64,000 nt of DNA. It comes from Stegostoma tigrinum. Its lineage: Eukaryota. The notes below the pieces were generated by a model, which worked only from the letters and a program-made list of their open reading frames with translations, was not told the origin of the DNA and ran no database searches. The stretch covers positions 9,772,035-9,836,034 of the forward strand of contig NC_081369.1 in the NCBI RefSeq assembly GCF_030684315.1. Reading direction: 5' to 3'. The first letter of the stretch is position 1. Each line of letters begins with the position of its first letter. Position numbers and translations under genes: made by a program. Shown here in pieces: positions 1 to 63,250 of the stretch.

Positions 1-3000
1 GATTTTGACTGAAAAATGAATTAACAGCTGAAATAAATCAGCTGTCATGTCAAACAAACTTATGGGATTTGACTTCCATTCTGCTCATTCAATGAATTTT
101 TATTTCATAAACTGAAGGAATGCAAAACAAAACAATATTGTGACAGCAGAAATACCACATTATAAATTGGTGAAAGAAATTTACAGACTAAGACTCAATG
201 CAGGATACAACTAAAGTTGGAGTCAGTAAAAGAGAAACAATCCAGTTTAAGGAAGTAGCAATTTGTCAACGTGAAAGTTGGCTTTCAATTTTTTCTAATT
301 TTTAAGAGGAAGCAAAGACTATCAGTGGTAGTGAGTTCCACTGTTTCAGCTGTTAGAATGAACCAGTTAACAAATGGAGGAAATGGTCAGAGTATGTACT
401 TCAACAAAATGACATTTATGGAACGGGTTTCAGTATGAATGTTGGCTTATTTGGAAATTAGGTTAAACAGATGAGAATTCAGTAGATAAATGACCATTGT
501 AGTATCTTACAAAGGCAAACAAATCAGAAAACAGTGGATACAAGAGGGGGGGGAAATGCCCTAAGAGGTTAAACGGTATGCTGAGACTTAAAAAGGAGGC
601 TATTTAAATATAGCAATAGTATTGAATCCAAGATAATATTTAAAACATGGAACTGTTGAAGATAACATAGATATTCAATCTGAAAATGGACATAACCTTC
701 TTAAAAGTAACGTTTTGTGCTCAAGTCTTGCAGACTTAGTGAACAATGAAGATGAGTAATTCAGTGCATGAAGGCCTACAGATTGAACCAACAAGAGAAG
801 AGATTTTGTTTAATTGCAAGTAACGTAAACAAAGTAGCTTTCTGAAAAATTGAGAACCAATTTATTTGTTGCACTGGAAGTTCAGTTATGAATTCACCTG
901 TGTATAATTATTTAAGAAATGTTGAGTTAAACAGATGCAAAAGGTTAGTAATGGTGGGAGAGGAAAATTTATGTAAGAGAGATTGAAAGGAATAATTAAG
1001 GGTTGTGTCACAATAGATGACAAACATTCAGAAAGCTAAGAAGCAATTTCAAACACTTAGAAATCCTTGGCAAGACTTTGAAAAAAAGAATTAAGAAACA
1101 GTCTGAAAAATAAAGGGAAAGGGACATCAGGTGCAGCAAGCAAGCAAATGGCAGCGATGCTAACACCCACCCTTCATTGGAACATATGAAATAGGAGCAG
1201 GAATAGACTGTTTGGTTTCTCACGCCTGCTGGAGAATTCAATAAAATCACGAATAATCTGATGAGACTTTAATTCCACTTCTCAACTACAACTCACTGTC
1301 CCCCGACCCCAATGACTCAACTTGGCCATTAACATTTGACTGCCTCATAGATCAGAAGTCTGTCTAACTCAGTCTTAAATATATTCAATGATCTAACTGC
1401 CACAGCTCTCAAAATAAAGAATTCCAAAGTTTAGATTGCCTTCTGACAGAAAAACTGATCTTCTTCATCTCCACCTTAAATGAGAAACCCAATACTTTTA
1501 AACTGTGACCCTTGTTCTTGATTGTCCTAAGGGGTAACACATTTTCAAGATCTACTCTGTAAACCCACCCTCAGAATCTTATATGATTTAATAACATCAC
1601 ATTACATTCTTCTAAAATCCAATGAGAAGATTCCAACCTGTTCAATGTGCTGTCATTAAAAAAAAACCCTTACATACCAGCATTAAATTGAGTAATGTTT
1701 TTCTCTCTACTTCTTACGTTGTAAGTATACCCTGTGCTGCAACTGCCCAAAACTGAAGTTGACCAGATGGCCACCTGGGGATGTTTTAGCTGACAAAAGA
1801 TGGGCAAAACGGGTTGACAGTTACTTGCAGCAGATGTTCACAGCCAGACTTGTGGCTTCTACTCAAGGTCACGGGATAAGACAATGAAATATCTCAGTAA
1901 GATAAGACAGGGGCAAGTTAGCAGTGAGGTAGTCCTGATAAGGGAGGCACAAATGAGCAGTTTTTTTTAGCAAACTACTGTAAAAGCTCCATTTAGTATA
2001 GAGCAGAAGGGGAACCTGGACCCATGTGGTTAAAGAAAACATTCAGGTAGTTGTAACTTACACAAAATACACTCTCAGAGATGTACGTTTGTACAATAAT
2101 AGTGTTACTTTTATTGTTACCATACAAGACGCTCATGAATTTAATTAAATTTCTGTAGACAGGCAGCTCTCAGCGCACAGGCATTTTTGATAAGAAAGCA
2201 TCCTTGAAAAATCAAGATGAGAGATGCTGAGTCACAACCAGTCTGAAGTTTAGAGTTTAACAAAAGCCAAAAATGTATGATTCTAAAATAATCTAGAGTG
2301 TTTGGGTAATAGTCATTACATATTAACGTACTGAGGTGTATGAGTGGTGTGAAAATAAAGGTGTAAACCTTAAAGTATCCAGATAAGGATTTAATTGAAT
2401 TCTTATAAGCAGCTAAAATAGCCAGTGAAAAAATCTCATCAGCAGGGAAGACAGAGCAACAAATCGTGTAAATAATCAATCTCTCAGAGAGCAAAAGAGG
2501 TTGTAAAATGCAAAGTAAACAGTTGTAGCTTCACAGCTCTGCTTGCAAAAAGCTGTGAAAATAATTGAATTTCATCCTTAGGAACTGAATTTGAATGTGC
2601 GCTAGTTGGTGGGGAAACTTATGTGAAAGTATTTGAAGTAAAGACAATGACGGGAGGAGTGTGGGCGTCTTGAACCAACTCACAGCTGCAAAATAAAAAG
2701 ACTGTGTATGTTTGATCTCCCCAATTTGTTACCTTTTTAAAGAACTTCAAGATTCAACGTAACTATATAACTTTATACACCTAACCAACTGTATATTTTA
2801 AGTGATAGTACACATTTCAGAATAACTGGTAGAAATTACCACCCTTTTGTATCTTTTATATTGACAGAAGTAAAATAGTTTGCAAAACAGAATGTAAAAG
2901 GTCCTTAGTGATAAATTATTGTTAATTAACGCGATGCAGCTGGCAAGCACCTGAGAAGGAGTGTGGTAATCAGTATACCGAAATCTGAATAAATGCAACT

Positions 3001-3424
3001 TCCATTGTAAGATTCCAAAGATGAGAAATAAAGATGTCTGGGAATGTCATGAGATCATGGGAAGACCTTCAGCTGTCCACAGAGATGTCAAACGCTGATT
3101 ATGTGTTTGCAGGATTGGATGCATAGCTTGGGGGGACATGGCTAATAGTGAGATAAATGTTGTATGTAATCATTGTAATGCAAAATATTCAAAAATGCTG
3201 TACTTGAGTGGGAAGGGCAGATTGGACACTATTCCACTCCCATGCTGCATGGTAAAGAACTCTGAATAAAGACTGACTTGTGCTGCTAGACACAGTACTG
3301 GAGGCATCATTTTGAGATCTCTCTCTCCCCATCATCCTGCTTAAGTAACGAAACCAAATTGTACACACCACCCCATGTGTCTTTTTTAAAAAATCAGTAC
3401 TTTGCACAGCTGCATCTAGATTTC

Positions 3425-3632
3425 GAGAGACCAAGAACTGCCGATGCTGGAGTCTGAGATAACACAGTATGGAATTGGAGGAATACAGCAGGTCAGGCAG
3501 GGTCCTGGCCCGAATCATCAGCTTTCCTGCCCCTCCCCCACTTCTGAAGGGTCTCTACCAGAAGTGTCGGCTTTCCTGCTCCTCTGATGCTGCCTGGCCT
3601 GCTGTGTTCCTCCAGCTCCACACTTTGCTATC
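3425..3632. mobile_element. older palindromic mini-PLE (family A-related)
   Basis: Inverted cagcagg...cctgctg arms; TSD TGCATCTAGA(T/C)TTC at 3411 and 3633. Confidence 0.75.
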
Positions 3633-4527
3633 TGCATCTAGACTTCCACACTTTTATAGCCCACATCACTTATGATAACGGCTAACATTCTATTTGCCTT
3701 TCCAATTATCTGTTGTATCCATGCATTAACTATTTTTGATTTGTACACACAAAAACTCAGATCCCTCTGTACCATAAGTATTCTGCAGTCTCTCTCCATG
3801 GAAATAATATTCTGCTATATGATTGCTACCTAAATTGTGGTGATGTTGCACGAGATGGTCAAGAGATGACTGCCCTCTGTGTTACATTATCATCTTTCCA
3901 TGGACCAGCATTGCAAGCAGGTTGTCGAAGGCATCCAGCCTCGCTTTAGGACACAACTGACTGTTACTATCCCTGCAAATGTGTTTTGAGGTAAAATGTA
4001 TTTGCATGTGATGGCAGAGTTCTGCACTACCTTTCTGTTGGCCTTAACCTTAAACAGACTATCTCCCATAGTCTTTGCTTGGTATGGGTTGTGAATCTTG
4101 GAAACTTGCTTCCCAAATGGCTGAGGATGCTACACCTTAAAATATCTAAGGCTTAGGTAGATAGATTTTGATCTCTCAGGGCATCAAGCAATAAGGCAAG
4201 CTGCCAGAAATATAGCATTGAAGCCAGATATCAGCAATGATTTTACTGAATGGCAGAGCAGACTCAATGAGCCTGATAACCTATGTCTGCCCCTCGTTCT
4301 TGTGTTATGAACTGAAGGGTTGCAGTTTGCCAGGTCCTCCAAATCTACTATCTTTAAAGATGACAATGCATTCCAGTCGCAGTGTAAAAAGTCTTGGGTG
4401 TATACCATTTTCAAAGCACCTCCACAGATAATCTTGCCACAGAGGCATCTTAAAATCTAATCCTTTGAATTGTATTCTATCCATGTGGAGAGAAGCAAAA
4501 CATTACTGTGCCTTTAAATATACTCAC

Positions 4528-4573
4528 CAAATCTGGATGTTCTTGATGCTTACAACAAAAGTTTTCGGTTCAC
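4528..4573 (-). CDS. possible small cytoplasmic exon of the receptor (GEPKTFVVSIKNIQI)
   Basis: Good donor TTG|GTGAGT and open in phase 1, but poor polypyrimidine tract (gtgtgtag) and no homology support. Confidence 0.2.
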
Positions 4574-4750
4574 CTACACACCTTACACGAATGAACTCAA
4601 AAGTAGATTTGTATAAAATGTTAACAATGCATCCAAAAATGAGCTATTGCAGATTTATCAGAGATAGCAAGAACTGTAGATACTGAAGTCAGAGACAACA
4701 CAGTATGGAATTGGAGGAACACAGCAGGCCAGGCAGCATCAGAGGAGCAG

Positions 4751-4778
4751 GACGTTTCGGGTCAGGACCCTTCTTCAG
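4751..4778 (-). ncRNA. minimal hammerhead ribozyme motif in a PLE terminal fragment (about 4660-4782)
   Basis: CTGAAGA-A-GGGTCCTGACCC-GAAAC-GTC. Confidence 0.5.
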
Positions 4779-5118
4779 AGAACAGATTCATTATAGTTTT
4801 GACAGCCATACGACATGGGAATAGACCTTTTGGTCTAACCAGTCTATGTCAACATAATTCCAAGCTAAAGTCGCCCCACCTATTTGCTCCCGATCTGTAT
4901 CCCTCCAAACCTTTCCCATTTGTGTAATTATCCAAACGTCTATTAAATTGTGTTATTGGGCCCACATCCATGACTTGCTCAGAAAATTTATTCCAAATGC
5001 AAACCAAACTCTGAAACATTTTCCCCAATGTCTTTCTTTATAATCTTTCTCATCTCACCTTAAAAATGCCCCTTCAAATCTTGAAAGCCTCTATCTTAGG
5101 GAAAAGATGCCGAGCATT

Positions 5119-5350
5119 AAAAACTGAAAGAATTGTGGATGCTGTAAATCAGGAACAAAAACAGAAGTTGCTAGAAGCTCAGCAGGTCTGGCAGCATCTG
5201 TGAAAATAAAATCAGAGTTCACGTTTGAGTCTGGTGACCCTTCCTCAGAATCCAGTTCTGTGGAAGGGTCACTGAACGCAAAACATTAACTCTGAATTTT
5301 TCTTCGCAGATGCTGCCAAGACCTGCTGAGCTTCTAGCAACTTCTGCTTT
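5119..5350. mobile_element. palindromic mini-PLE (family B)
   Basis: Inverted gctcagcaggtctggcagcatctg arms around a gacccttcctcag/gaagggtc centre. Confidence 0.8.
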
Positions 5351-5560
5351 TACATCTACCATCAACCCTATCTATACCACTCATTATTTTATAAACTTCT
5401 ATACGGTCACCTCCCACCCTCTTACATTCCAGTGAGAAAGGTCCCAGCCTACTTTGTAACTCAAACCTTCCATACCCAGCAAGATCCTGGTAAATCACTT
5501 CTGAAATCTCACCAGCTTAATAATATCCTTCCTATCACAAGGCAACCAAAATTCAAGTCT

Positions 5561-5804
5561 ATAAAATGTGAGGCTGGATGAACACAGCAGGCCAAGCAGC
5601 ATCTCAGGAGCACAAAAGCTGACGTTTCGGGCCTAGACCCTTCAGAGATCTCTGATGATCAGAGATCTTCATCATCTCTGATGAAGGGTCTAGGCCCGAA
5701 ACGTCAGCTTTTGTGCTCCTGAGATGCTGCTTGGCCTGCTGTGTTCATCCAGCCTCACATTTTATTATCTTGGAATTCTCCAGCATCTGCAGTTCCCATT
5801 ATCT
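5561..5804. mobile_element. palindromic mini-PLE (family A pLTR ends head-to-head)
   Basis: Near-perfect inverted arms; 15 bp TSD CCAAAATTCAAGTCT (5546-5560, 5805-5819). Confidence 0.88.
5674..5708 (+). ncRNA. minimal hammerhead ribozyme motif in PLE pLTR
   Basis: CTGATGA-A-GGGTCTAGGCCC-GAAAC-GTC^AG: intact core, stem II, palindromic ACGT in place of stem III; stem I only 2 bp. Confidence 0.6.
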
Positions 5805-6573
5805 CCAAAATTCAAGTCTGTTTTCCAGAAGAGGCCTTACCAATGTCCTCTACAACCTCAACATGACTTCTCATCTCCTATTACTCAAAGGGCTGAGCAA
5901 TGATGGCAAGTGTGTGAAAACATCTTTTTAATCACTTTGTCTAGATGTGAAACAAACTTTGAAAAATTGTGTACATTAACCCATAGATCTCTCTGTTCTA
6001 CAGCCCTACAATTAATTGTATAAGTCCAACCCCTGTTTGTGGTACCAATATGCAACAGCTCGCCTTATCCAGATGGAACAGCATCTGCCATTTTTCAGTC
6101 CTCTAACCCATTTGATCAAGATCTGTCTGTAATCTTAAAGAAGCCATCTGCATACCTGCTACTCCACCAATTTGCGTTGTCTGCAACCATGCCTTCTATC
6201 ATCTCATCCAAATCATTTATATCAAATGACAAACAAAAGAGGACAAAAGAACAAATCCCTGCAGAATGCTGCTGGTGACAGGCCTCCAGTCCAAAAAACA
6301 ACGCTCCACTACCTCTGTCTCCTGCTGTTAAGCCAATTATGTATCAAATCGGCAAGCTCACTCTGAATCCCGTGACTTAACTATACTGATTAGTCTATCA
6401 TACAGAAGCTTGTTGAAGGCTTTATTCAAATCTAAATAGATAACATCTACTGCTCTGCCCTCATCAATCTTTTTGGTAGCTTCCTCTAAAATCTCAAAAT
6501 CAGGATTATAAGACATGATTTTCCTCGCACAAAACAATGCTGACTGTCACTAATCAACTTTTACCTCTCTAAG

Positions 6574-8312
6574 TATTTCCACAATAAAAAAAAATGATAC
6601 CGCTGGAAAACTGCTTTCGCAATAATGTAGCGAATAATATGTAAGTTGTTTGTGAACACTTTGCGCCTACTTCCAACGAAATTGCAAACCTGTCTGCAGA
6701 GAACGCAAGTATAACTTCACTAGAAGCTCTGAATAGAATAGAACTTGGAAATGTGATTTGTCATTTGATATGTAACTATGACATGCTTCAATCCAACAGT
6801 AAATTTTCTTAATACATACTAAAGTAGTCAAATATTGAGTTATTAATTATTTAAAAAGAAATCACATGACTAATTTGGATACTTGATTTTTTTCCCCTAT
6901 CTATCCTGCTTTTCTACAATCCTTTTTTTCAAACAATCACTCCTAATAATTTACCCACAATCACAGGTCTAAAGTTCCTGGTTTCCCTCACAGCCCTTCT
7001 TAAACTTGCAAGATTAGCCAGCCTCAAGTCATCAGGGACCTCACCCGTGGTTATAGATGATGCAAATAGTTCTCACAATGTTCTGGCATAAATGAGTTTA
7101 GGTCTTATCCATCATTAATATTCTTTAAGACCTCCAGAACTTCCGCTTCTGTAATGTAAACTATTTTTAAAACATCAAAATTTATTTCTCTGTCTTCTCT
7201 AGCCTCCCCTTCTTTCCCCAGATAAAACTTTACAACTTGGTGTCTTTGTGTATTTGCATTATTCATTAGTATTAAATCTAGAAGTTCTAACTTTAATGTA
7301 ACTAGATGGCTACTTACCTTTACGTTTACAGCATTTACAACAAATGACCACCACAATAATAATCAGAAGCAGTGAAGATATTGCTATACAGATGTAGATC
7401 CACCAAGGAAAAGATTCACTGATACTGCGATCTGCAAGAAACACACAAAAAGAAAAAAGGTATTCAATTCTAGTAGAAAAACACTGGTGTGTTAGAACAA
7501 TAGATGCTGACTTAACTCAGCCTCCAGGTTATTCTGATGGCACTTTACAGATGATATTGTGAACTTAAGTTACCTGCACAATAACATCACGGCAGGCTTC
7601 GCATCCAACATTTCAATGTGGGCGATAACAGTACTTCAAACATATAAACTTCTCCCTCAAATACATTAGGTGTGGGTTTGAACATTTGAATGCAGGTCCT
7701 ATACAGTTTGGTTCAGAATAGCAATAGATTGGATATATCACATACAGAATCCATAAGCTTGGAAGTGAAAAATTGATGAATTGAAGGTTTCAATGGCTGC
7801 ACTCTTCAAAAGATGAATTTTATTCTCTGCATCTTATCTATATCATATTTAACTTGGATATATTTGCACAAAAAGAAAATGTCATTCTTCAGGACATTCA
7901 TTTTTGTTCGGCTAGAATAAACTATCCTCAAATATGAAAAATGCAAAAATATTTCCACGATAAACAAAAATAATGATACCGCTGGAAAAATGCATTTGCA
8001 AATGTAGCAAAAAATATGTAACTTGTTTTGTGAACAAATTTAATTGCTCTTACTTTCAAATAAACTGCAAATATGTTTGCAGACAACACAAGTATAACTT
8101 TTCTAGAAGATCTAGAGAATAGAATAGATCGCCAGAATAGATCTTGGAAATTTGATTTGTCACTTGAAATGTAACTACAAACGTTCGCCAATCCAACAGT
8201 AAATTTTCTTAACACATACTAGAGTAGTCAATGTTGAATTCTTTGTTATTTAAATAGAAAGCACATGATTAATTTGAATTCTTGATAATCTTTCTTTCCA
8301 TCAATCCTGCTT
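6574..8312 (+). repeat. diverged direct duplication, copies 6574-6911 and 7950-8312
   Basis: Colinear blocks TATTTCCAC, AATGATACCGCTGGAAAA, CAAGTATAACTT, CAATCCAACAGTAAATTTTCTTAA, ATCCTGCTT. Confidence 0.9.
7318..7431 (-). CDS. IgSF receptor exon 4: connecting peptide, transmembrane helix and stop-transfer
   Basis: Acceptor tgtgtttcttgcag; 114 nt, phase 1-1: DRSISESFPWWIYICIAISSLLLIIIVVVICCKCCKRK; donor AAG|GTAAGT. Not in the ORF track. Confidence 0.88.
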
Positions 8313-8764
8313 AATGAATTTATGTGTTGCAACCTTGGGATTTTGAAAGTGCTTTGCAGCCAGTTAAGAACATTTAAACATGTAGCCAATTTGTGTGCAG
8401 CAATGAGCATAGTGGAAAGTAAGCCAGGGCTATTGAAACAGAAATATGAATTTAAATTACACCACAGCTGCAGAAGAATTAGCATTCAATTAATCAATTA
8501 AATTTAACATAAAAATGGTACCATGTAGTAACTTTTGGATTGTCATAAAACCCCTACTGGTTCACCGATGTCTTTCAGAAAAGGAAATAAGCCATTTTTT
8601 CCCTATCTGGTTAGTACGAACACCTAGATTAATGCAACTCATTCTTATCCTTCTAGTATACCATGGGTAATTTGAAATAAATATTGTCAGTGTTATTCAC
8701 ATACTGTGACTAAAAAGCATGGTGAGGCTTCAGCTCATTGTGCTAACTTCTTGTTGACTTTTGA

Positions 8765-10240
8765 TCACAGGAACTGGAACTGCAGACCTATCGGCCTTAC
8801 ATCAGTAGTCAGGAAAATGCTACGATTAGAAAATGCATGAAAAATGAACACGTAAATAAAAATTCTTTGTTTGGTTGCATTCTGCATGGACAAATTTACT
8901 GATTTTTTTTGAGGATGCTGGTAGCAGAATTGGTAAAGGGGAGTCAATGTTTGTACTACATTAAGATTTTCAGAAGGCTATTGCTAAGGTCCCCCACAGA
9001 CATTTAGTTTGAAAAATTAAAGCATATGGTGCAGAAAATAATGTACTGACAAGGGTTTGAGATTATGTTCTGTGTTAGCCGATATAGGAGGAAGTGGGTT
9101 ATTCTCAGGTTGACAGACTGAGACTAGTGGGTTACTACTGGGCCCAGCTGTTCACAATACAGAAAATGATTTGGCTATCTGGAGTGAATGTAATATTTTC
9201 AAATTTGCAGATAATACAAAGCTAAGTAGGAATGTGTGTTAAGAGGAAGATATGAAACATTTTCAGGAGGATTTGGTCGGGCTGTGATTGCGCAACAACG
9301 TGCCAGATGGAATAAAATGTGGGGAAAAAAATCAGGTTACCACTATGGAGGGAAGCACAGGTGTGCAGAGTATTTCTTAAATAGTGAGAGGTTGGAAAAT
9401 GTATATGCTCAAAGGTGACTAGCTGTCCTTGTCAATAAATTACTGATGGCTAACATGCAGGTACAATAAGCTTGTAGGAAGGCAGAAAGAACATTAGCCT
9501 TTATTGCAAGAGGATTTGTGTACTGGTGAATCTTTGCTTTAATTATGAAAGAATTTAGTTTAGATTACAGATGAAAATAAATGCTGGCACAGCCAGTGAA
9601 TCCTCATTCCCTGAATGATTGAAAGATAAAAATGCCACACTTGGACTACTGTGTGCAGTTTTGGCCTCGTTATCTCAGGAAAGATAATATTTCCATTGTG
9701 GGAAAATAACAAAGTGTCACCAGACTTGCTCCAGGATGGCTGAATTGTATTATAAACACAGATTGGGCAAACTTGTTTCACTCAAGGGAAAAGTGATCTC
9801 GTTTGAAAACTATAAAACACTTAAAAGGAATAGACAGTGTAGATGCAGGTAAGATGCTTCCCCTGGCGAGAGTCTAGAATCAGGAGACAATTTAAAAATA
9901 AGGGGGATGACACTTAGGTCTGAGGTGAAGATAAACTTATTTTCAACTCAAGAGGTTGACGCTCCATGGAATTCTCAATCACAGAGGGCTGTGGAAGCCC
10001 AGTCTTTGAATATGTAGACATTGAGAAATTTCTGAATCCCCACAGGTGGTTTTGGGGATGGGGTAGGGAGCTGTTTAGGCAAGTTAATGTGCATCTTGTT
10101 CTCTGGTTTAGGTTGGAGGGACGAACTTGTTGATCTTTTTGATGGACTAGATTTGTTATTTTGAAAAAAACAACAGTTGTATGGAACGTTGACAAGATCG
10201 CAGTAAAGGAGGGGATGGGACATTCTGGATGTGAGAAGGA
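8765..10240 (+). mobile_element. decayed CR1-type LINE RT fragments
   Basis: DFQKA..KVPHR, KFADNTKL remnants; similar fragments at about 1180-1730(-), 15950-17090(+), 18115-18370(-), 32090-33130(-), 33600-34000(+), 42890-43245(+), 47150-47450(+). Confidence 0.65.
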
Positions 10241-10724
10241 GAAAAATAAAAGAATAAAAGAGTCATGGATTTATTTTCTGTGCGGCCACGTATACATGAA
10301 GCTGCAAGTGTAAATAACGGTACATTATACAATTGAAATGTCCAAAGATTGTCCCATAAATAGACAAGGAAATTTTTGAACTGTCAAGGTGCATCTTGAA
10401 ACAATCTGAGGATACTCTCCCCAAATGCATTTTTGTAATCAATAAGCTGTTGTTTGATTTACTTTGAAGTTTACTTGTGACGATTTAAAACAGAAATATA
10501 TTGAGTAAAATTAATCTTTAAAATTGGTGAAAAATTGTATCACTGAGGATGGTAGTTGCAGTTGATACACCAGGCCATCAGGCTTGATCAATTTTACCAA
10601 ATTTTTCAAAATCACCTGCCCTACATTTACAGCCTCTCAGGCATTTATGGTGAAAATGCTTCAAACCAAATGCAGTAAAGCCACAGCATGCTTGATTTCA
10701 CAACTAAATAAACATTGTTCTTAC

Positions 10725-11021
10725 CTGGAATATCAACTGTGTAATTGGTCCTAGTTGGATCCTTGAGGGTAGTGTGAGATACCTCACAGACATAAACAGT
10801 TCCAGTATGAACTGGCTGTGTTTCTACCAAATAACTGGTAACTTCATAAAGTCCCTCAGTGTTCTTCGCTCTGGATGTCTTTATTCCCGTTCCAACATTT
10901 TGACCATTTTTACGCCAAGCAATCGTGTAATTATCAGGATAGAATGCAGATGTTTTACATATACATGTTAGAAAGCCATCCGCAGAAAACTTTGGAATAA
11001 TCTTCAGAGGATGTGGAGAAG
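10725..11021 (-). CDS. IgSF receptor exon 3: C1-set domain
   Basis: Acceptor tttttttctgtag; 297 nt, phase 1-1, open: ASPHPLKIIPKFSADGFLTCICKTSAFYPDNYTIAWRKNGQ...GLYEVTSYL...YVCEVSHTTLKDPTRTNYTVDIP; C..FYP..W and YxCxVxH are C1-set hallmarks; donor G|GTAAGA. Only the 3' part appears in the ORF track (10645..10830). Confidence 0.92.
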
Positions 11022-12946
11022 CTACAGAAAAAAATAAAAAAAGGTTTCTTAATTTCCAAGTTAGACTGCATATACAGTATATTTCTTTGGGTAATGTTTA
11101 ACATCAATGTAGTTGTTTTTTACTTATTAACTGGTTCATAGAATCCTTTTATTTGATACGATTGTGAATTACTTTGTATTAATTTTTGAGCTTGGCTGTT
11201 GAGAAAATTCTGACATAACATTAAATAGAAACTTGGGGTATTTGCAACATATTGTAGTGTAATAAGACTACATACAAAAATGTGGATTATTCAAGAATTT
11301 ACTGGGTGAATACATTATTTGTTGGTTCAATCGCTGGGTCGGCATTGGATTAATTAGTGCCATTTTGCATGATTATAATTGGCTTAGGTTCAAGTCTGAC
11401 GTGCTCCAGAGATAGGTCATAACATCCCTGAACAAGTTGATTACAAATATCTCTGAGGCTAAATAGGGAAAATTAAATGAGCCATGTTTCAAATTGCTAT
11501 CCAACGATGCCTGTGAAAATGTTTACTGAGAATATCCACTCAGAACGCAATTGATTTTCTTGCAAATATTTTGTAAAATTCATTGTTCGTGCTAATTGAC
11601 AGAATAGCTTAGCTCTAGCTCTGCCCAACAGAAAAAGGACAATGATAATCACTATGTCAGCTACTTGCATGGAGCACACTAAATTTTATAAGACAAAATA
11701 CTGCAAGGCTGAATGGGGAGGATATTGAGTCGTCCTACTGCCGAGACCTGGCACTGACATAAAGGCTGAATGGCAAAGTATTATTCTGTAGCCATTGTAT
11801 GATTTAATTTTACATTTCTCAGTATTCTGGAATCAAGAAAAAATAATTCTGGTAATTTCCCCTGGAAAAGGTTTCAATAAAAATAATCATTACTCATTTG
11901 GCACATATTACTACATAAAAGATCCCAACAGAAGAATCAATATGACAAGTACAACACAGGAACAATTTGTTTAGGGAAACTAGAACATGTGCATATTTGC
12001 ATTTCTTTTTGGTCATTTGTGTAATGTGAATTTGGCCACATGTTCTGGTTGTTCTCAGTTGTTCTTGAGAAGGTGATGGTGAGCTGCCTTCTTGAACTGC
12101 TGCAGTCTATGAGCTGTAATGGGGCTGAAAGTGCCCTTTGGGTGATAATTTCAAGATTTCTCCCCAGTAGCAGTGAAGGAACGGTGATATGTCTCCAAGT
12201 CTAGATGGTGTGTGGCTTCGAGGGGAACTTGCAGGTAGTACTGTTCCAGTTTACCTGCTGCCCTTATCTTTCTAGATAGTAGTGCAAATAGAATTGGAAG
12301 ATGCTGTCTGAAGGTCTTTGGCAAATTTATGCAGGACATCTTGGAGATAATACAGTGTGAGCATTGTGATGGAGTGACTGAATGCTTATGGATGTGTTGC
12401 CAATCACATAGGCTGCTTTGTCCAGGCAATTGGGGAGAATTCCATCACTTTAGAGAATTTGGAGGTGTTATTCTTTGCAGTATTAGTAGACTCTGACCTG
12501 CTAACTAAACTAGAGATAAATAGCTTTAAAAGCAGGATGAAAAGATGGACCTTAAATTTAAACATGTAATTTGCATTTTTTAAAAGGGCACTGCATTTAT
12601 TTATGCCTGATCTAATGTGGGACTGTTTGCTGTTAGCACTGGGTGCCTGAATTGAAAGATTTCCATCCTATTCCATTAACCTAAATGAATCAACTGGACA
12701 ATAGGCGATTCATTTAATGCAATATTACAAAATGAGACAGTTAAATAGCAAATTTGCAAAAATAGAAACCTTCAAAAAAAGTAATCATAATGTAAGAAAT
12801 TTTATCTTTAGTTTGAAAGTTAAATCTAAAACTAATCTTAAGCTGAACTTCACTGGTTGGAGGAATGATATTAATTGGGAAGCTATAGTAAATGTTATGG
12901 TACTGCAAATGCAGTGGCTGTTTCAGTACAGCTTGAGCACTAGCAT

Positions 12947-14513
12947 AACAAAAAAAAAATCCAAAAGAACTGCGGACGCTGTAAATCAGGAACAAAAACA
13001 AATTTGTTGGAAAATCTCAGCATGTCCGGTAGCTGGGTGGTGAAGGAAAAAACAGGGTTGGCGTTTTGTCCGATGACCCTTCCCGAGAACTGATACTGGC
13101 TGGGAAAATGTCAGTTTATGTGCGCAGAAGAGGTGGAGGGGGAAATTGGGTAAAGAGTAAATAATAGGATACAGTCTCAAGTTAGGGAAGAGCAGTTGGA
13201 CAGATGAAGAGTTGATAATGATGGCTGGGAGAATGAATAGTTGTTAATGGGGACTAACAGTGACTACTAACAGGTAGTGTATAAGGGCAGGCTATGTGTT
13301 AACAAGGTCTGATGTGTGGGGTAGGGTGCTGGGGCATGGAAGAGCTTAGGTCTTAAAATTAAGCCTGTCTCCATTGCATATGTTCAGATGAGGCCAACTT
13401 TGACAAGGGAGCCTCCAAATTGTCCAAATTCTTCCTCAGCCAAGGATTCCTCTGCTCTGTTGTCAACAAGGTCCTCAATTGAATTCGACCCATCTCCCAC
13501 AGTTCTGCCCTCACTCCATTCTCTTCCCTCCCGCAACAGCGATGGGATTCCCCTTATTCTCACCTACCATGCCACCAGAATCCACATCCAGAAGAACATC
13601 AGACACCACTTCTGCCAGCTCCACCAAGATGCCATCACCAGACACATGTTCCCCTTCCCTCCCTTGCCCACCTTCCGCAGGGACCACTCCTGCCAGGAAA
13701 CCCTAGTCCATACTTCCTTCACCTCCAACACCTCCCCACAGCCCTACAGCACCTTCCCCTGTAAATGGCAAAGGTGCAACACCTGCACATTTACCTCCTC
13801 CCTCCCCAGTATCCAAGGCCCAAACATACCTTCTGGGTGAAGCAACACTTCACCTGCACTTCCAAGAATTTAGTCCACTGCATTCACTGCTCACAATGTG
13901 GTCTCCTCTACACTGGGGAAATGAAGCATAGACTTGGCGACCACTTTGCAAAACATCTACATTCTGCTTGCAAAAAAAAGACCCTGAACTACCTGTCGCC
14001 TGCCACTTCAATGCACCACTTTGCTAACAGTCGCCATTAACAACTATTCACCCTCCCAGCCTGATCGTGAGCAACTCCTTTGTCTGTCCAACTGTCTTTC
14101 TCTCTCTTTGGGCTCTATCCTATCATTTACTCCCTACCCCACCCTCCTCCCTATCTTTTGCATATAAGCTGATGTTTCCCCAGCCACCATCAGTTCTGAG
14201 GAAGGGTCATCAGATCCGAAAAGTTAACCATGTTTTCTCCTCCATAGTTGCTGCCAGACCTGCTGAACATTTCCAGCAACTTTGTTTTTCTTCCTTAAAA
14301 TTATTGAACTCATTATCAACTCTTTGTCTGTCCAACTCTTTAAACTCTATCCTATTGTTTACTCCCTACCCCATCTCCCTTCCCCTCTTTGCTGCATACA
14401 AACTGACATTTTCCCAGCCAGCATCAGTCCGAGGGAGTTTCACCCAAAATGTTAACTGATTTTTACCTTCACAGATACTGCCAGACCTGCTGAGCTTTTC
14501 CAGCAACTTTGTT
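12947..14513 (+). mobile_element. Penelope-like element (family B): inverted 5' pLTR, truncated body, tandem 3' pLTRs
   Basis: NLVHCIHCSQCGLLYTGEMKHRLGDHF; inverted terminal copy at about 12958-13360; repeated 3' ends; 15 bp TSD CTTGAGCACTAGCAT (12932-12946, 14514-14528). Confidence 0.88.
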
Positions 14514-14620
14514 CTTGAGCACTAGCATTGTAGCCTTATTTCAAACATACACAAAAATGCTCACTTCCAAAGTTGAAGTGAGAGTGACTGCTGTTCATAA
14601 GAAGGACATATTAGACTCAG

Positions 14621-14808
14621 TAAAAAAAAGTGATCGCTGTATATCAGAAACAAAAACAGAAATTGCTGGAACATCTCAGCAGTTCTGGCAGCAACTGTGG
14701 AGAGTAATCAGAGTTAAAGTTTTGGGTTGAGTGACCCTTCCTCAGAAAATGAACAGAACATTGAGAGGAAGTGTCACTTGATCTGAAATGTTAACTCTGA
14801 TTTTGTTC
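14621..14808. mobile_element. mini-PLE (family B)
   Basis: Inverted centre; TSD CATATTAGACT(C/T)AG at 14607 and 14809. Confidence 0.78.
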
Positions 14809-17800
14809 CATATTAGACTTAGCATGGCATCATGGAACTCTAACAAAATGCGAGTCAAAGGAAATAGGTGGAAAAATCTCCAATAGTTGGAGTCATATGT
14901 AACACAAAGGAAGAGCACAGTGTGGTTGAATACCTTCCTTCATCCTGAATAACTTCAGCACGAACAACTCTCAGGAATCTTGACACTTCAAAACCAAGCA
15001 ATTCTCTTATTTGGCACCACATCTACAAATATTCAACTGCTCCATGACCAATGTTCATGGGTGTAATGTGGACCATCTATCAGATGCACTGCAACATCTC
15101 AGCAAGGTTCCTCAGATAGCACATTCTAAACATTTGACAACTGCCATCTGAAAGGATAATGGCAGCAGATACATGGGAACAAGACCACCTGCAAATTCTG
15201 CTCCAAGCCATTCACCATCCAGACTTAGAAATACATTTCCATTCCTTCAGTTTTGCTGTGACAAAATCATAGAACTCTCCCCAAGTGGCATTTTGGGTGT
15301 ACCAAGCCAAATGGATTGCCGTCGTTCAAGAATGGTTCACCAGCGTCTTCTCAAGGCCAGTGAGGGATGGGCAGTAAATGCTGGGCCAGGATTAAAATGA
15401 ATGTTGGTAAGATGTTATGAGGACATAAGTTGATCCAAGAAATTGATTAGGCTAAAGAATGAGAGTATACTAGCAAGATATCCTTTCTTTTAAACAAAAG
15501 GTTGAAAATGCTTCAATAGAGTCAATACAAAAAGTTTCTTCTTGCATTTTCTGCCTGAAAACAGGTCTGATACCTTTGGCAAGAAGAGTGATCATGATAA
15601 CACTCTCAGCACAATTTGGACTGACAAAAGCTATTGACATCAGTACGATCAACAGCTGACTGAACTAACCATCCCCCAAGGAGACTAAGTTGCTGTGGCA
15701 ACATGCATGAAACTTTGGCAGAGGCTGTAGGTTTCTCACCTTCACCTGGATGTGTGATCAGGCAGTTGAACAGGTAGCTGTTGCTATTACTTCCCTCATT
15801 GGTGTGTGTTGGATGAATTTATAAGTTGATGCTCATACATTTAGTCATCTTATGGATACACCTTGCTTGCCATTAAAGCATGGATTGCAATTTGAACCAG
15901 AAGAATCTGGCTCAGAGGCAACAAAACTGTCATTGTACCATAAGACTTCCAGAGAGGAATCAGTAAAAAAGTAAATGTAGGCCTATTAGAAGCAGAAACA
16001 AGCAAAAGTATAATGAGGAAATGACAGAAGCACTGAACTGATACAATACAGCAGAAGACAAAAGGCTGCAAAAAGGGGCAACCAAATGCCCTGTAAAAAT
16101 TAGGAAACTAAAAGAAATCCATATCAGTAGAAAATCTAATGGTTTTAAGTGGTCATTAGTCCTCCGTTCCTGAAAATCTGTATCATAAAGTTTTAAAAGT
16201 GGTAGCAGCAGGGATCATTGGTGCATTATTTTTATTTCCAGAATTCCTTAGGTTAAATATAATTCATAAGAATCAACAGGTAGCTGACATAAACTTATTA
16301 TTTAACATAGGGGCAAGGGCTAAAACCAGAACTGTGGGCCAAATAATCGAGTATTCATAGGTAAAATGCTCGATGCTATTGTTAGAGGCAGGGTAACACA
16401 GCGCTTGGAAAATCATATGATTAAGCAGAGTTGACATGAAATGAAACAGTTTCTGTTAGGAGCTTTTTGAGGATGTAGTTACAAAGATTGTTCCGGTTGT
16501 TAGTTTTTTTTTGTTCTGAGGTTTCCAAAATGTATTCAATAAAGTTATGAAACAAAGTTAGTATTCACAAGGTTTGACGTCACATATTAGGATAGATTGA
16601 GAGCAAGTGAAAGGCAATGTGTAAAGGGAAGATATTCCCTTGGTAGTTATTCCGCAGAAGGGAATTGTCCTTCGACGAGGTTGAGTCGACTCATCAGTTA
16701 CTGCCTAGAATTGGGGAGACTGAGAGTTGATTTAACTGGAACTTGAAAAATATTTTGAACAGGGTGCCCAGGATAGAAAGTGTTCCTCCTGTCTGAGGTC
16801 GATCAACAAAGGTCGACCATTTTGGAATCCTAGGAGCAGTGGATGTTGAATGTGGTCAAGATTGACATCAATAATCTCGGGGTACCAAGGAAATAAATGT
16901 ATTTTGGGTCCAGGAATGAAATGATTAGTAATATTCAGTGCGCAGGTGCCTTTGGTGTATATCAGTCAGGGTATTGTTGAATATTAGGGTCAACCACTAG
17001 CTTCTACTTCTTAACATCCTTGTTTTTAACAACGTCTAGCCGTGAGCCGAACGGCCTATTTCCCTGTTCTATCTATGGTAAATCTATGCAATAAATATTT
17101 CACATTCAGCAACATAAAACATTTTTCTATTCTATCATAACTTGCAGCCATGGACTAGCGACTAATAACAAGGTTAACGGCGGAGTCTGTGCCAGTTCTC
17201 CACATTTCAAACTGCTGATAAAACCCAAAAATGAAGTCGGCGATTGGATTAAACTCACCACATCCCATTTTTATAATGAAGATTAGATTTCGGGCAGGTT
17301 AGCCTCTAGCCACTGACCTGGCTGCATTCTAAGCCACACCAACATCACAGTTTATATGCAAGCGAGATTTTACTTTTTTAGAAAAGCCTGGTTGTTAGCT
17401 TAGATAATAAATTATAGGGCCCCGCGACGACCGCAAATAGCCAGTCTCACCGCTGATTCGAACGACGTTTAAAAGTTACAAGGTCTCAAAATCAGACCTT
17501 GCGTTTTCTTACCCAATTGTTATCTACTCGTTTGAACTGTTCCTCTGGAGTTAGGTCAAGCTTTGAAACGCTAATGTAAAGCGAGTAGCTGGGCTTGAAT
17601 CCTCTGAATCGTTGACGATTCGGGAGCAACATGCATTTGACACGAAATTGAATCGTTAAACATTTTTACCATTTAGATACTAGATATTCTGTTCTAAAAG
17701 TTATGGCCTCTCACTTTTCAGGGGTTCGGATTGTTGTTATCTAGATTTGAGACCAATCTGCGTTTCACTTAGGCTGAGGCATGGTGAACCAGCCTTTCAA

Positions 17801-18378
17801 ATAAATAAAACAAAGGACAGCGGATGAACATCTGAAACAAAAGCAGATATTGTTGGTGAAACTCTGGCAGGCATCTGTGGAGGCAAAGTACAGCTAACGT
17901 TTCCAGTCCAGTGACCCTCCTTCAGAACAGACTCCTTTCGTACTATTTTTATGTGGGGCGACTCGCCCGCTCTTAACCATTACTCTCGAAATAATAGCCG
18001 CAGCTTCAGCACGGCTCAAATGGTGCTCTTATTGGGGAGGCAGTTTTGTGATGTTCAGTCTTGGAACTTCAGTGTTTCCTATTGTGATTGTCACAATATT
18101 AGGGTTTGGGCCGTCAGAGAGTCATAGAGATGTACAGTGCGGAAACAGACCCTTATGTCCCATGCTGACCAGATACCCGAAACTAATCCAGTCCTATTTG
18201 CCAGCATTTGGCTTATATCCCTCTAAACTTGTTCTATTCATATATCCATCAAGGTGCCATTTAAAATGTTGTAATTGTACCAGCTTTCACCACTTCCCCA
18301 GAAGTTAATTCCACACATGCACTACCCTTTGCGTGTAAAAGTTGTCCCTACGTCCTTTTCAAATCTTTCTCTTGTCAG

Positions 18379-18832
18379 TTTTACCGTGATTTCTAACTTG
18401 GCGCATGATCCAACATGGTTCATTTTACACAAGAGGCAAACAATTCAGTTACTCTCTGTACAGCCAATATGTCATAGCGATTCAGGGTGCGCAATTCGCG
18501 TCTCTGCCACATTTTATTATCGTTGAGATTATCCGTCTAATACAACCGCACCAATTCAGAATCACTTCCAGCGGCCCTTAACTGGTAATGCGAATTAGCT
18601 GCTGTTTCTTCAATAATTCGCATATATCAGTTAGGGCCGCTAGAAGAGATTCTGAATTGGTGCGGTGGTGTTAAACAGATAATCTCAACAATACTATAAT
18701 TTGGCAGAGACGCGAATTGCGCACGCTGAATCGCTATCATATTTTGGCGTACGAACAGTAAATGAATTATTATCCTCCGTGTAAAATAGACTATGTCGGA
18801 CGCTGCGCCAAGTTAGAAATGTCGGTTTAAAA
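18379..18832. repeat. ~450 bp imperfect palindrome (probable MITE/foldback element)
   Basis: Arms 18379-18597 and 18614-18832, 16 nt loop; e.g. ATTTCTAACTTGGCGCA / TGCGCCAAGTTAGAAAT and CCGCACCAATTCAGAATC / GATTCTGAATTGGTGCGG. Confidence 0.92.
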
Positions 18833-19940
18833 GCAAATGTAGTGAAGACAGAAGTGCCGTAGATAAAAGCAATATCGTCGGTCCGTCCTGTTGAAGAGTC
18901 AAGCTGTGACTCAGGCTAGCGGAATACACAATCTGACTGCAATTACTTTGAAACTCCTTCATATTTCCGAGTGCGATTATACTGCATTCGGGAGAATAAT
19001 GTTGCAGACTAGCTGGAGTAACTCGTTTTATAATAAGTTATTTCGGTCCAGAGACCCTACCATAAAAGAAACAAAACCTCAACTTGCTTCTACGGTCAGG
19101 ATTAGGAAAGCTCCCCGCGTTATTCTACAAGCTCAAACATTCTTCACCTTCCCGTGCTCATGTTATTCATACCGTTTAAAAAAAAATCGGCTTAAATAAT
19201 AGCCTCAGAACTTCTTCAATAAATCCTGGACAAGAGCCGTAATTTTTTTTCACTATTTCACGTTTCTCGTGGGCGAGATTCCATCTCTTTCGACTGGAGA
19301 AGGATGAGGATGCAAGGCACTGTAACTCGACACGGGCTGATTTATCTAAACCTCCAATGTAGATAAGATGGTGCAGCTTTCCTTACAAAAATGATTGAAC
19401 GTTAGTCGGTAAAAGTTTTTTTCCCCCCCCAAAAAAAATCCGACCCGCAGTCATCTAGCTTTGGTGTTGGCAAGTCCGCAGTTTTCATTTCGGGAATTCG
19501 CCGACAAACGGTTAGCAATTAAATGGTCAAACTGCGTCCGAAACTCTCAGATTTCATTACCGCGTAGAGGAAGGTCGAGAATAAGTTAGAGATTTCACTG
19601 GGTGGAAGGTGAACGATAATGAGAAACTCAGTTCACGATAACGATGCAAAATGTAACATCAGAGCAGACTGCGAAACATGTATTTTGAAAAATGTTATTT
19701 GACTCCCTGCAGCAAAAGATTTCGAAATAGCAACTAAAACAGAAGCGTGCTGTCGATACTCTCCCCTTGTTCTAGCCCACTGAATTGCCGAATATTCAAT
19801 TTTCGGCCCTGAATTTCCAGCAACAAGAGCGCATACTTCCCGCGCCCAGTGAGTAATATTGGTTAAAGCTGCACCCAAGTTGCTCCATTTTCCCGGATAC
19901 AAAAGCTTGTTGCACACCGGGTGTGCAATCTGTTTTGAAC

Positions 19941-20080
19941 TATAGAATCCCTACAGTGTGGGAAAAATGCCTTTGACCCATTGAGTCTGCACCGACCCTC
20001 TCAGGAGCATCGCAACCGAACCCAGTAATCCTGTATTTACCATTGCCAAGCCACCTCACCTACGCACATTTGGACTCTGA
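19941..20080 (-). mobile_element. HE1-type SINE 3' fragment
   Basis: Reverse complement of the cacactgtagggattcta tail and the agtccaaatgtgcgtagg core. Confidence 0.65.
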
Positions 20081-20202
20081 ATCTACGCTACAGGAGAGGA
20101 AATGCCTATTATTTGCATTATCCTTCCCAGCCGTCCTCTCGTTTCAACTTTCCCGTCCCTCTCACTGCCGTTTATTCCACGTTGCTGGGAGCGATTACTT
20201 AC

Positions 20203-20508
20203 CGCTTACATCCAGCCGTTTGCCAGTCCCATTTCCAGTATGTTCACCCTGCACTCTGCAATAGTAGACGCCGGCGTCTCCAAAACGCACATTGTGAATG
20301 CGCAGAATGGCGCTGGCTTTGCTCTCAATCTGGAACTCTCTCCTGGAATCCTGTTTCGAGCTCAAAAATTCGCGGTCGCCGTCTTTCCACCAGTGCACCG
20401 TGATTTTTTCTGGATTTCGGAAGAGCGGGAACGAGCAGTAAAGAGTCACTGTCTGTCCGACGACCGCGCTGGGCGGTTTCAGAAATTGAAGCACTTGAGC
20501 GGCCGCTG
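20203..20508 (-). CDS. IgSF receptor exon 2: V-set domain with germline J-like G strand
   Basis: Acceptor ttgttttctcag; 306 nt open; AAAAQVLQFLKPPSAVVGQTVTLYC...VHWWK...AILRIHNVRFGDAGVYYC...NGTGKRLDVS has B-strand Cys, C-strand Trp, DxGxYYC and GxGxxLxV; phase-1 donor G|GTAAGT. Confidence 0.95.
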
Positions 20509-20783
20509 CTGAGAAAACAAACAAAAACATCAAACATTTATTTGCAGGAGGACGGCGGTGAATGGAAAACTTGTAACAACAAACAAGCAAACAACTAGGG
20601 GAGCGGCAACGGCGCTTATGACTGCTTGCAAATTTTTTTTTCGAAAGACTAGAAACTCCAGAAAGAACATGTATTTACTGTTTACGGCTGAAGTTGTTAC
20701 AAGTCATGGCCATACAAAGAAAATGTTGTAAGTTGTACATGCGAAATCATTTATGTAGCAATCGTTGAATTGAAGACACGTAC

Positions 20784-20838
20784 CGGTACAAGAAAGGATC
20801 AGGATGAGCACGGGGCGAAGTTCCATTGCTCGGGACAT
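20784..20838 (-). CDS. IgSF V-C1-TM receptor, exon 1: signal peptide MSRAMELRPVLILILSCT (alternative ATG at 20826)
   Basis: ATG at 20838 and in-frame ATG at 20826 (gcaATGG context); hydrophobic core VLILILSC; phase-1 donor G|GTACGT; splices in frame to AAAA-QV of the V exon, giving a typical split leader. Confidence 0.85.
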
Positions 20839-31455: not shown

Positions 31456-31614
31456 TTAACACAAGTACAGAGAAAGATAACAAAATAATCCGTTCTAGGC
31501 ATTCAGTCACACAGGCTAGTATTTGCCTTGTATTAGGGTATCTTATAACTTCTTCAATCTCACCACTTCACCATCATCTCCCACGTGAGATGTAGAGGTA
31601 CTGCAGGCAAATAT

Positions 31615-62642: not shown

Positions 62643-62789
62643 CACTTGACCCCTACTGTTAATTCTGCTTTCTCTCCAAAGATGCTGCCAGGCCTGCTGA
62701 GTTTTTTTCCAGCAATATCTGTGTTTGTTTCTGCATTGTACTTCATCTTCTGGCCAACACAGGAGAACATCCACTGAACTAACACAGCA

Positions 62790-63250
62790 TTTGCATTGTT
62801 TCGCGGGCTCGGTTACTCTGAGCTCCCCTTTTTTCCAGCCTACTACCCTCCCTTGGCTGTTATGCAAACCGTCGCTTCCTCTCACCATGTGAGTACTCGA
62901 GTCCCCGGCTCCAGGCCTCGCTCACTCGCTCCTTCGTTTTCAACAGTAATGAGTTCAGCTCCGCAAGCTCCCTCTCCTTTAGCTGTCTCTTCCCTCCGAC
63001 CCACTTCGCACCCTCTTGGAGCTCATTCCCAGCCCGTAACAGATGTTCTAAACTCAGAGAATCACCTGCGGTCGCTGTCTCGCCTCGGACTACATTTCCC
63101 GGCAACTCGCGGTTCGCCAATTGAAACTGTTCTTTCCTGCAACAGCGCCACCTGCAGACTGCAGCGGTGTTGAATTCTCCAGAGAGCGGCAGACAGTGGA
63201 GTGGTGAGATAGTGCATTCCTGTGGCAGCAGGCGGGACTGCAGCCACTCT
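62790..63250 (-). promoter_or_regulatory. CpG-island promoter of the OGFOD1 copy with ZNF143/THAP11-type and CTCF-type motifs
   Basis: CpG-dense around exon 1; GGACTACATTTCCCGGCAAC at 63087-63106 resembles the ACTACAnTTCCCAG motif; CAGCGCCACCTGCAGA at 63143-63158 resembles the CTCF core. Confidence 0.6.
62886..63026 (-). pseudogene. OGFOD1: OGFOD1 pseudo-exon 1
   Basis: ATG at 63026 gives MSSKRVRSGS then an early TAA; a shifted frame gives KERELAELNSLLLKTKERVSEAWSRGLEYSH (cf. KKEVMAEFS...QVAEAWSRRTPFSH); donor G|GTGAG. Confidence 0.8.

Follow-up and report, generated by a model that had tools for sequence, protein, structure and literature searches.

The 64-kb stretch of zebra shark (Stegostoma tigrinum) DNA analysed here, referred to as the window, contains exons 1 to 4 of the zebra shark version of an ancient VJ-C1 gene, whose product probably acts as a fixed recognition partner and not as a diversified antigen receptor. 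The encoded type I membrane protein combines a split leader, a germline VJ, one C1 domain, an uncharged transmembrane (TM) segment, a Cys-rich juxtamembrane region and a 66-aa basic tail. The gene is a slowly evolving, non-ITIM member of a large VJ-C1 family of cartilaginous fish, with the SIRPs as its likely nearest characterised relatives.

The gene lies on the reverse strand. Exon 1 (20838-20784, 55 nt) starts with the ATG at 20838, encodes the first 18 codons of the split leader and ends in phase 1 at a GT donor (20783); its translation is identical to the N-terminus of P0159/P0184, the S. tigrinum RefSeq proteins XP_048402917/XP_048402916. Exon 2 (20508-20203, 306 nt), with an acceptor AG at 20510-20509, a donor GT at 20202 and phase 1, encodes the end of the leader and a V-set domain whose J-like G strand is already fused to it in the germline. 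A second acceptor (cag/cag) 3 nt downstream moves the start of exon 2 to 20505 and gives the 323-aa isoform; RefSeq holds only two zebra shark isoforms, X1 and X2, which differ at this acceptor by a single Ala. Exon 3 (11021-10725, 297 nt) encodes the C1-set constant domain, and exon 4 (7431-7318, 114 nt) encodes a short stalk, the TM helix, which is uncharged, and CCKCCKRK, a juxtamembrane stretch rich in Cys and Lys; both have AG/GT borders and phase 1. Intron 2 (11022-20202, 9181 nt) contains no additional Ig-like exon, and intron 3 (7432-10724, 3293 nt) carries a high-copy repeat at about 9165-10080, the depth of which in DNA contigs was 4-20 times that of its flanks. The four sequencing runs compared consist of genomic DNA contigs with even intron coverage, and so carry no information on splicing.

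The exons were searched individually, and the identical RefSeq protein P0159 was used for full-length comparisons. The BLASTP/HMMER check proposed in an earlier note on this DNA returned a protein of the same species that equals the exon translations residue for residue: all four are open and 100% identical to the corresponding parts of P0159/P0184. This protein is machine-annotated, has 323/324 aa and carries the product name "NCR3LG1-like". The four GT-AG, phase-1 exons that the note described were recovered at their coordinates, but its frame end at 7318 was not, as the RefSeq protein runs further. With a GT donor at the end of the TM exon and a further 66-residue cytoplasmic tail in RefSeq, the 257 codons cover exons 1 to 4 of a gene that continues beyond them. 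The start of intron 4 (1-7317) has no match to the P0159 tail or to profile positions 259-330; the tail is not encoded there, so its exons must sit beyond the start of the window. No extra or decayed Ig exon was found in the window by tblastn and a six-frame family-profile search, in which only the four exons matched, and the other long ORFs of the window had no curated Pfam match.

The V exon ends in YYC-RVQGEHT-GNGTGKRLDVS, with the J-like G strand in the same exon as V. It matched the Pfam models V-set (2e-10) and Ig_3 (2e-12), and the family profile at 1e-56. The combination of V and a J-like strand (GxGTxLxV) in one exon, following a leader split after codon 18, is that of a non-rearranging VJ gene, and in most orthologues a T follows the GxG of the motif. 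The FR2 region reads WWKDG and is not of the WYRQ type. No CACAGTG heptamer was present within 5 kb of the V exon, the nearest lying at 14916; the 64 kb contain 7 copies, compared with 10.5 expected, and no heptamer-spacer-nonamer was found anywhere in the window. The motif and these searches bear out the earlier description of a J strand fused in the germline without recombination signals.

Exon 3 scored 2.9e-11 with the Pfam C1-set model and 8e-4 with C2-set_2. A (F/Y)(F/Y/H)P motif at the start of the BC loop is a criterion of the C1-set (PMC2785349). The exon has FYP after Cys B, Y147 and P148 being invariant among the orthologues, 13 residues between Cys B (C141) and Trp C (W155; P0159 numbering), and the x-V-x-H motif after the strand F Cys, in the form C-E-V-S-H. 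The predicted C1 domain aligned to Ig CL, MHC II, IgNAR C and TCR C with Z 13-14 and an rmsd of about 2 Å over 94-102 residues. The C1-set call previously made on this exon is thus supported by the Pfam score and by all the C1 hallmarks.

In the structure model, the TM helix spans residues 228-253. The stalk and TM segment, DRSISESFPWWIYICIAISSLLLIIIVVVI, has no charged residue inside the helix and no cysteine between C1 and the membrane. The tail contains no ITIM, no ITAM and no conserved tyrosine motif; in the ortholog alignment, CxRC is conserved and the end is basic. A penultimate cysteine is present in the tail of several shark orthologues and absent in catsharks, rays and the chimaera. 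Exon 4 (114 nt) is flanked by phase-1 junctions and can be skipped without a frameshift, and the TM-less RefSeq isoforms of five other species (P0157, P0158, P0164, P0168 and P0171) omit exactly the exon 4 segment, in frame.

Orthologues of the gene turned up in about 20 species of sharks, rays and chimaeras. Those with 35-89% identity come from Rhincodon, Hemiscyllium, Chiloscyllium (2 species), Heterodontus, Carcharodon, Cetorhinus, Mustelus, Scyliorhinus (2 species), Heptranchias, Pristiophorus, Narcine, Hemitrygon, Hypanus and Callorhinchus. All group in a single clade whose branching agrees with the species tree (SH-aLRT 91-100 on the main branches), and by this tree the gene predates the chimaera/elasmobranch split. 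Identity to the zebra shark protein was 48-78% in V, 35-76% in C1 and 18-69% in the tail. FPLF, WW, DAGVYYCRV and G-E-x-x-GNGTG-x-x-L-x-V, together with CxRC and KKH in the tail, are invariant throughout the clade, the CDR1- and CDR3-like loops hardly vary, and all aligned orthologues carry a single C1 domain. The white shark ortholog lies on a 193.5-Mb chromosome; the white shark MHC is on chromosome 19 (PMC10751288). RefSeq labels vary by species: NCR3LG1-like, SIRP-like (SHPS-1-like), Ig lambda-1 light chain-like, tapasin-like, CD276 homolog and PD-L1-like. The two labels that the earlier note had predicted from annotation pipelines, SIRP-like and NCR3LG1-like, are both among them.

The clade belongs to a large VJ-C1 family that we found only in cartilaginous fish and that fits the poorly characterised shark receptor family suggested beforehand; it is unnamed and SIRP-like. 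Other members have ITIM-like tails, and among the proteins looked up these paralogues came from cartilaginous fish only. The paralogues share a chromosome with the ortholog in each species; P0194, on the Stegostoma chromosome of 68 Mb, is an example. A skate member of the family contains two C1 domains. Outside cartilaginous fish, the best hit was a SIRP-alpha-like protein of a mammal (1.8e-24), following a drop from 7.8e-48. V and C1 align collinearly with it (29% identity over 227 residues, E 2e-15), and hhalign gave a probability of 98.9%. In the comparison of the family profile with the PDB, Ig, UrIg2 and B7-H6 scored similarly to SIRP. The SIRP-like placement of the family rests on these word-limited searches, in which the margins are modest. 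Clean orthology to SIRP or NCR3LG1, which according to the earlier note would remove the novelty, was not seen: SIRP-alpha reached 29% identity, and since Ig lambda C, UrIg2 and B7-H6 score close to SIRP, there is no clean orthology to a characterised gene. An ESM Atlas search returned only generic V/C1/B7-like clusters. Full-text literature searches found no paper describing the family, and the accessions and labels of the orthologues were not found in the available part of the PMC10751288 supplement.

Several known systems resemble the gene in part. NKp30 (NCR3) also has a V domain of the non-rearranging VJ type, whose J-like motif includes an N-glycosylation sequon, and it gave the highest identity among V-only structural matches to the model (28% over 99 residues, Z 12.3); NKp30 was not among the best 60 PDB sequence matches of the V exon and, unlike the shark gene, it has no C1 domain. 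PRARPs have a single V domain and are not known to have a C1, and for this reason the idea of a PRARP ortholog was dropped. The elasmobranch genes UrIg and UrIg2 (PDB 9dmx) likewise do not rearrange, have their VJ in one exon behind a split leader and encode C1-type domains; when the family profile was compared with the PDB, UrIg2 ranked second (1.5e-24). However, the number of C domains in UrIg2 is 9-11, and UrIg, as published, is a secreted protein with several of them (PMC12227049); the shark gene encodes a single C1 and is part of a separate multigene family. UrIg lies in the MHC (class III region), UrIg2 in the Ig/TCR complex (PMC12227049). Ig light chains and TCR chains share the split leader, a V domain ending in a J motif and one C1, and TCR chains also the TM; in the shark gene, by contrast, V and J are fused in the germline and the CDR3-like loop is invariant across species. 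The TCR-chain layout proposed earlier applies to the domain order VJ-C1-TM, but the likeness ends there, with no charged TM residue of the kind used in CD3 assembly and no stalk or interchain cysteine.

The order VJ-C1-TM with a split leader, as in antigen-receptor genes, and the age of the gene, older than the chimaera/elasmobranch split, would suit a direct and little-changed descendant of the VJ-C1-TM gene split by the RAG transposon, closer to Ig/TCR than SIRP, UrIg and NKp30 are. The structure model was also matched best by Ig light chains in Foldseek (about 1e-15), and the C1 exon by the Ig lambda constant domain (30 bits, followed by UrIg2 C domains) among single domains in PDB sequences, but Ig chains dominate the PDB, so such match lists are biased toward Ig. 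We consider this descent unlikely: the TM without charge, the stalk without a pairing cysteine and the FR2 sequence all argue against it, and the features in its favour are common to SIRP and UrIg/UrIg2. The link to a pre-RAG ancestor made in the earlier note is not specific to this gene, having already been argued for SIRP (PMC2785349) and for UrIg/UrIg2 (PMC12227049, PMC10751288). SIRP itself (alpha/beta/gamma; PDB 2wng) has a non-rearranging V with a J-like strand, followed directly by a true C1 and then the TM. A further reading makes the gene the functional ortholog, in cartilaginous fish, of a mammalian SIRP, a CD47-binding myeloid receptor. SIRP is the closest family outside cartilaginous fish, the V-C1 collinearity extends to the motif that follows the F-strand Cys of C1, several ITIM-like tyrosine motifs occur in the paralogues as they do in SIRP-alpha, and the two C1 domains of the skate member point in the same direction. 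However, the SIRP ectodomain consists of V and two C1 domains, while in the shark gene there is a single C1, and neither the stretch between the C1 and TM exons nor the rest of the window showed a trace of another. It also lacks the ITIM tail of SIRP-alpha and the basic TM residue (lysine) by which SIRP-beta uses DAP12, it has instead the conserved CxRC, the basic tail end and, in other species, the TM-skipping isoform, and the identity is only 29%. With the ITIM-bearing paralogues being better SIRP equivalents than this clade, if any are, such orthology is improbable.

The RefSeq name points to B7-H6 (NCR3LG1), which, like B7/butyrophilin proteins, has the V-C-TM layout. The family profile scored B7-H6 chains at 3.4e-21, high for a two-domain chain, and the modelled rigid V-C arrangement superposes on B7 ectodomains with Z of about 13 over 184-197 residues. 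Even so, orthology to B7-H6 is very unlikely: the match is limited to the end of V and the C domain, RefSeq names of the orthologues disagree among species, and the shark C domain has all the C1-set hallmarks, which would be expected to be absent from a B7 C domain, and scored poorly as C2-set_2. B7 V domains are not known to have the J-like GxG motif seen here. A silent or decaying copy, open by chance, would agree with the run search, in which no RNA run containing the V exon was found for zebra shark. We regard this as the remotest of the explanations, since the four exons are open with intact splice sites, the protein is conserved across cartilaginous fish, its tree agreeing with that of the species, and the sole difference of the C1 exon in another DNA data set is synonymous.

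As a fixed recognition partner, the protein would work as one side of a cell-cell recognition pair, by analogy with SIRP-CD47 or NKp30-B7H6. Judged from conservation of the sequence, the V domain may bind one conserved, probably host-encoded, ligand through the nearly invariant CDR1- and CDR3-like loops. The protein probably does not signal through ITIM, ITAM or DAP12-type adaptors; the juxtamembrane cysteines are presumably palmitoylated, and the CxRC motif of the tail could recruit a partner. Skipping of the TM exon may release a soluble form in zebra shark as in the five other species. There is a slim chance that the gene encodes the ligand, or a TM-less soluble decoy, of the fast-evolving ITIM-bearing VJ-C1 receptors on the same chromosome. 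Both receptor and ligand would then be VJ-C1 proteins, providing a living model of pre-RAG recognition between paired V-C1 chains. On this same speculative reading, the basic tail, with the penultimate cysteine of several shark orthologues, might play a role in the soluble form like that of the Ig secretory tailpiece.

In summary, non-rearranging V-C1 genes are the main material for picturing the antigen receptor before the arrival of the RAG transposon. The non-rearranging VJ-C1 architecture is already known from SIRP, UrIg and UrIg2, so the gene is not a new kind of receptor, and it opens no new question. It adds a slow-changing member with the minimal VJ-C1-TM layout and a putative invariant binding loop, present in every cartilaginous fish examined. 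The large, unnamed SIRP-like family of cartilaginous fish to which it belongs is labelled in six ways by annotation pipelines, and its recognition is useful for annotation and comparative immunology.

Reading of the minus strand confirmed the four exons proposed in the earlier note: a leader exon (20838-20784, 55 nt), a V exon (20508-20203, 306 nt), a C1 exon (11021-10725, 297 nt) and a TM exon (7431-7318, 114 nt). The introns are GT-AG with phase 1 at all junctions, and exon-by-exon translation showed an open frame in each exon. The exons were searched singly, each by its coordinates, and full-length work was carried out on P0159, a database protein. The V exon matched Pfam V-set (2e-10) and Ig_3, and the C1 exon matched Pfam C1-set (2.9e-11). 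Three sequence hallmarks of C1-set domains were defined by Hatherley et al. (PMC2785349), and the C1 exon carries all three: FYP, 13 residues between Cys and Trp, and x-V-x-H. The J-like strand is fused in the germline, as had been claimed, with the V exon ending in YYC, a nine-residue loop and GNGTGKRLDVS (GxGxxLxV). The absence of recombination signals also held: the 5 kb on either side of the V exon contain no CACAGTG, and the window as a whole contains no heptamer-spacer-nonamer and has a CACAGTG count below chance expectation. The gene therefore encodes a true VJ-C1 protein.

The V-exon HMMER scan returned a set of 260-380-aa proteins sharing the layout of the gene. A search with one of these matches (P0007) identified P0159, the Stegostoma tigrinum protein XP_048402917, whose gene is located on a 68,031,557-bp zebra shark chromosome. 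The exon translations from the window are identical to P0159, and the zebra shark gene is already present in RefSeq under an automatic name. The 257-codon frame of the earlier note is open across the four exons, but it is a partial CDS, as RefSeq has 66 residues after the TM exon. These tail residues were not found in window 1-7317 by tblastn or with the family profile; the 3' exons encoding them sit past the window start.

RefSeq isoforms X1 (P0184, 324 aa) and X2 (P0159, 323 aa) differ by one extra alanine in X1 at the leader-V junction. The V-exon acceptor is a tandem cag/cag, 3 nt apart (window 20505-20511, minus strand), which accounts for the two isoforms, and the 306-nt V exon is the X1 form. 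In five other species, RefSeq isoforms lack exactly the TM-exon segment (P0157, P0158, P0164, P0168 and P0171). Because this exon is 114 nt long and in phase 1 on both sides, a transcript without it stays in frame and still encodes the tail, and the five products have no TM but retain the basic tail. TM-exon skipping may yield a soluble form. The tail has a penultimate cysteine in several shark orthologues, though not in catsharks, rays or chimaera, and in this it loosely resembles the Ig secretory tailpiece.

Several other features of the window were observed. Position 10978, inside the C1 exon, is G instead of A in all four DNA runs; the coding change is GAT to GAC, so Asp is kept. Intron 3 contains a high-copy repeat (about 9165-10080), where the DNA contig depth is 4-20x that of the flanks and many joints are partial. 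Two related retroelement-like ORFs on the minus strand (30606-31502 and 61414-62888) both carry a Cys-rich stretch and, after it, a GIY-YIG-like motif; the Pfam GIY-YIG match (5e-4) is below the cut-off, and the ORFs may be Penelope-like elements. No further host genes were seen in the 64-kb window.

Orthologues were found in sharks (whale, epaulette, two bamboo, horn, white, basking, smooth-hound, two cat, sevengill and saw) and also in an electric ray, two stingrays and the elephant fish. A likelihood tree with 40 family members places them in a single clade that branches as the species tree. Its main branches have support of 91-100, and the protein of the window pairs with that of the whale shark (89% identity). 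In the V domain, the orthologue alignment shows invariant FPLF in the CDR1-like loop, WW in strand C and DAGVYYCRV, followed by an invariant G-E-x-x-GNGTG-x-x-L-x-V, which means that the CDR3-like loop does not vary across the whole class. The C1 cysteines, PWW/AWW at the TM start, and CxRC and KKH in the tail are also invariant. The alignment contains no conserved tyrosine motif, and neither it nor the TM exon shows a charged residue in the TM helix or a stalk cysteine.

The relation to known receptor families was evaluated by sequence and by structure. With the orthologue profile, the first match outside cartilaginous fish was a mammalian SIRP-alpha-like protein (1.8e-24), and the weakest family member above it scored 7.8e-48. 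BLASTP aligned the gene product with this protein collinearly, from V across the J-like strand to the first C1 (29% identity over 227 residues, E 2e-15), and hhalign gave a probability of 98.9%. SIRP is accordingly the nearest family by full-length sequence search. Against the PDB, the same profile placed Ig heavy chains and UrIg2 (1.5e-24) at the top, then B7-H6 (3.4e-21) and SIRP-alpha (1.5e-20), values that are not directly comparable as domain numbers differ among the chains. For the C1 exon, an Ig lambda constant domain was the top single-domain match, with UrIg2 C domains next. In the AlphaFold model, pLDDT is 80-94 for most of V and mainly 66-87 for C1, and the tail is disordered; the best Foldseek matches of the model were Ig light chains. 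Among cluster representatives, Ig CL, MHC II, IgNAR C and TCR C were tied for the C1 domain and B7-family ectodomains for the rigid two-domain shape, and NKp30 had the highest identity (28%) to the V domain alone. Ig light chain, UrIg2, SIRP and B7-H6 lie about equally far from the gene (20-30% identity). No clean orthology to a characterised gene was found, and this is mirrored in the six names that RefSeq uses for the orthologues.

Many more cartilaginous-fish proteins have the VJ-C1 ectodomain and between two and four ITIM- or ITSM-like motifs in the tail, P0194 of the zebra shark among them. In one member, from a skate, there are two C1 domains. All ITIM-like members looked up are from cartilaginous fish, and those looked up share a chromosome or scaffold with the orthologue of the gene in each species. 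P0061 of the sevengill Heptranchias perlo, which has ITIM-like tyrosines, is sister to the whole conserved clade; this position hints that the non-ITIM tail derives from an ITIM-bearing ancestor. The white shark orthologue lies on a 193.5-Mb chromosome and the white shark MHC on chromosome 19 (PMC10751288), so MHC linkage of the gene is unlikely, on this indirect evidence.

The gene encodes a type I membrane protein that has a germline-fixed V domain, a single C1 and no classical signalling motif. SIRP-alpha uses its V loops to bind CD47 (PMC2785349). In a similar way, the V domain would most likely bind one conserved host ligand, because its CDR-like loops are nearly invariant class-wide while the paralogues vary. 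Palmitoylation is likely at the Cys/Lys-rich stretch that follows the TM, and the CxRC motif with the basic tail end may bind a cytoplasmic partner.

Non-rearranging V-C1 genes have been proposed as kin of the receptor ancestor for SIRP (PMC2785349) and likewise for UrIg/UrIg2 (PMC10751288, PMC12227049). Our literature search found no published description of the present family, and an earlier description is possible. The gene is best described as a minimal and conserved member, lacking ITIMs, of a still unnamed SIRP-like family in cartilaginous fish.
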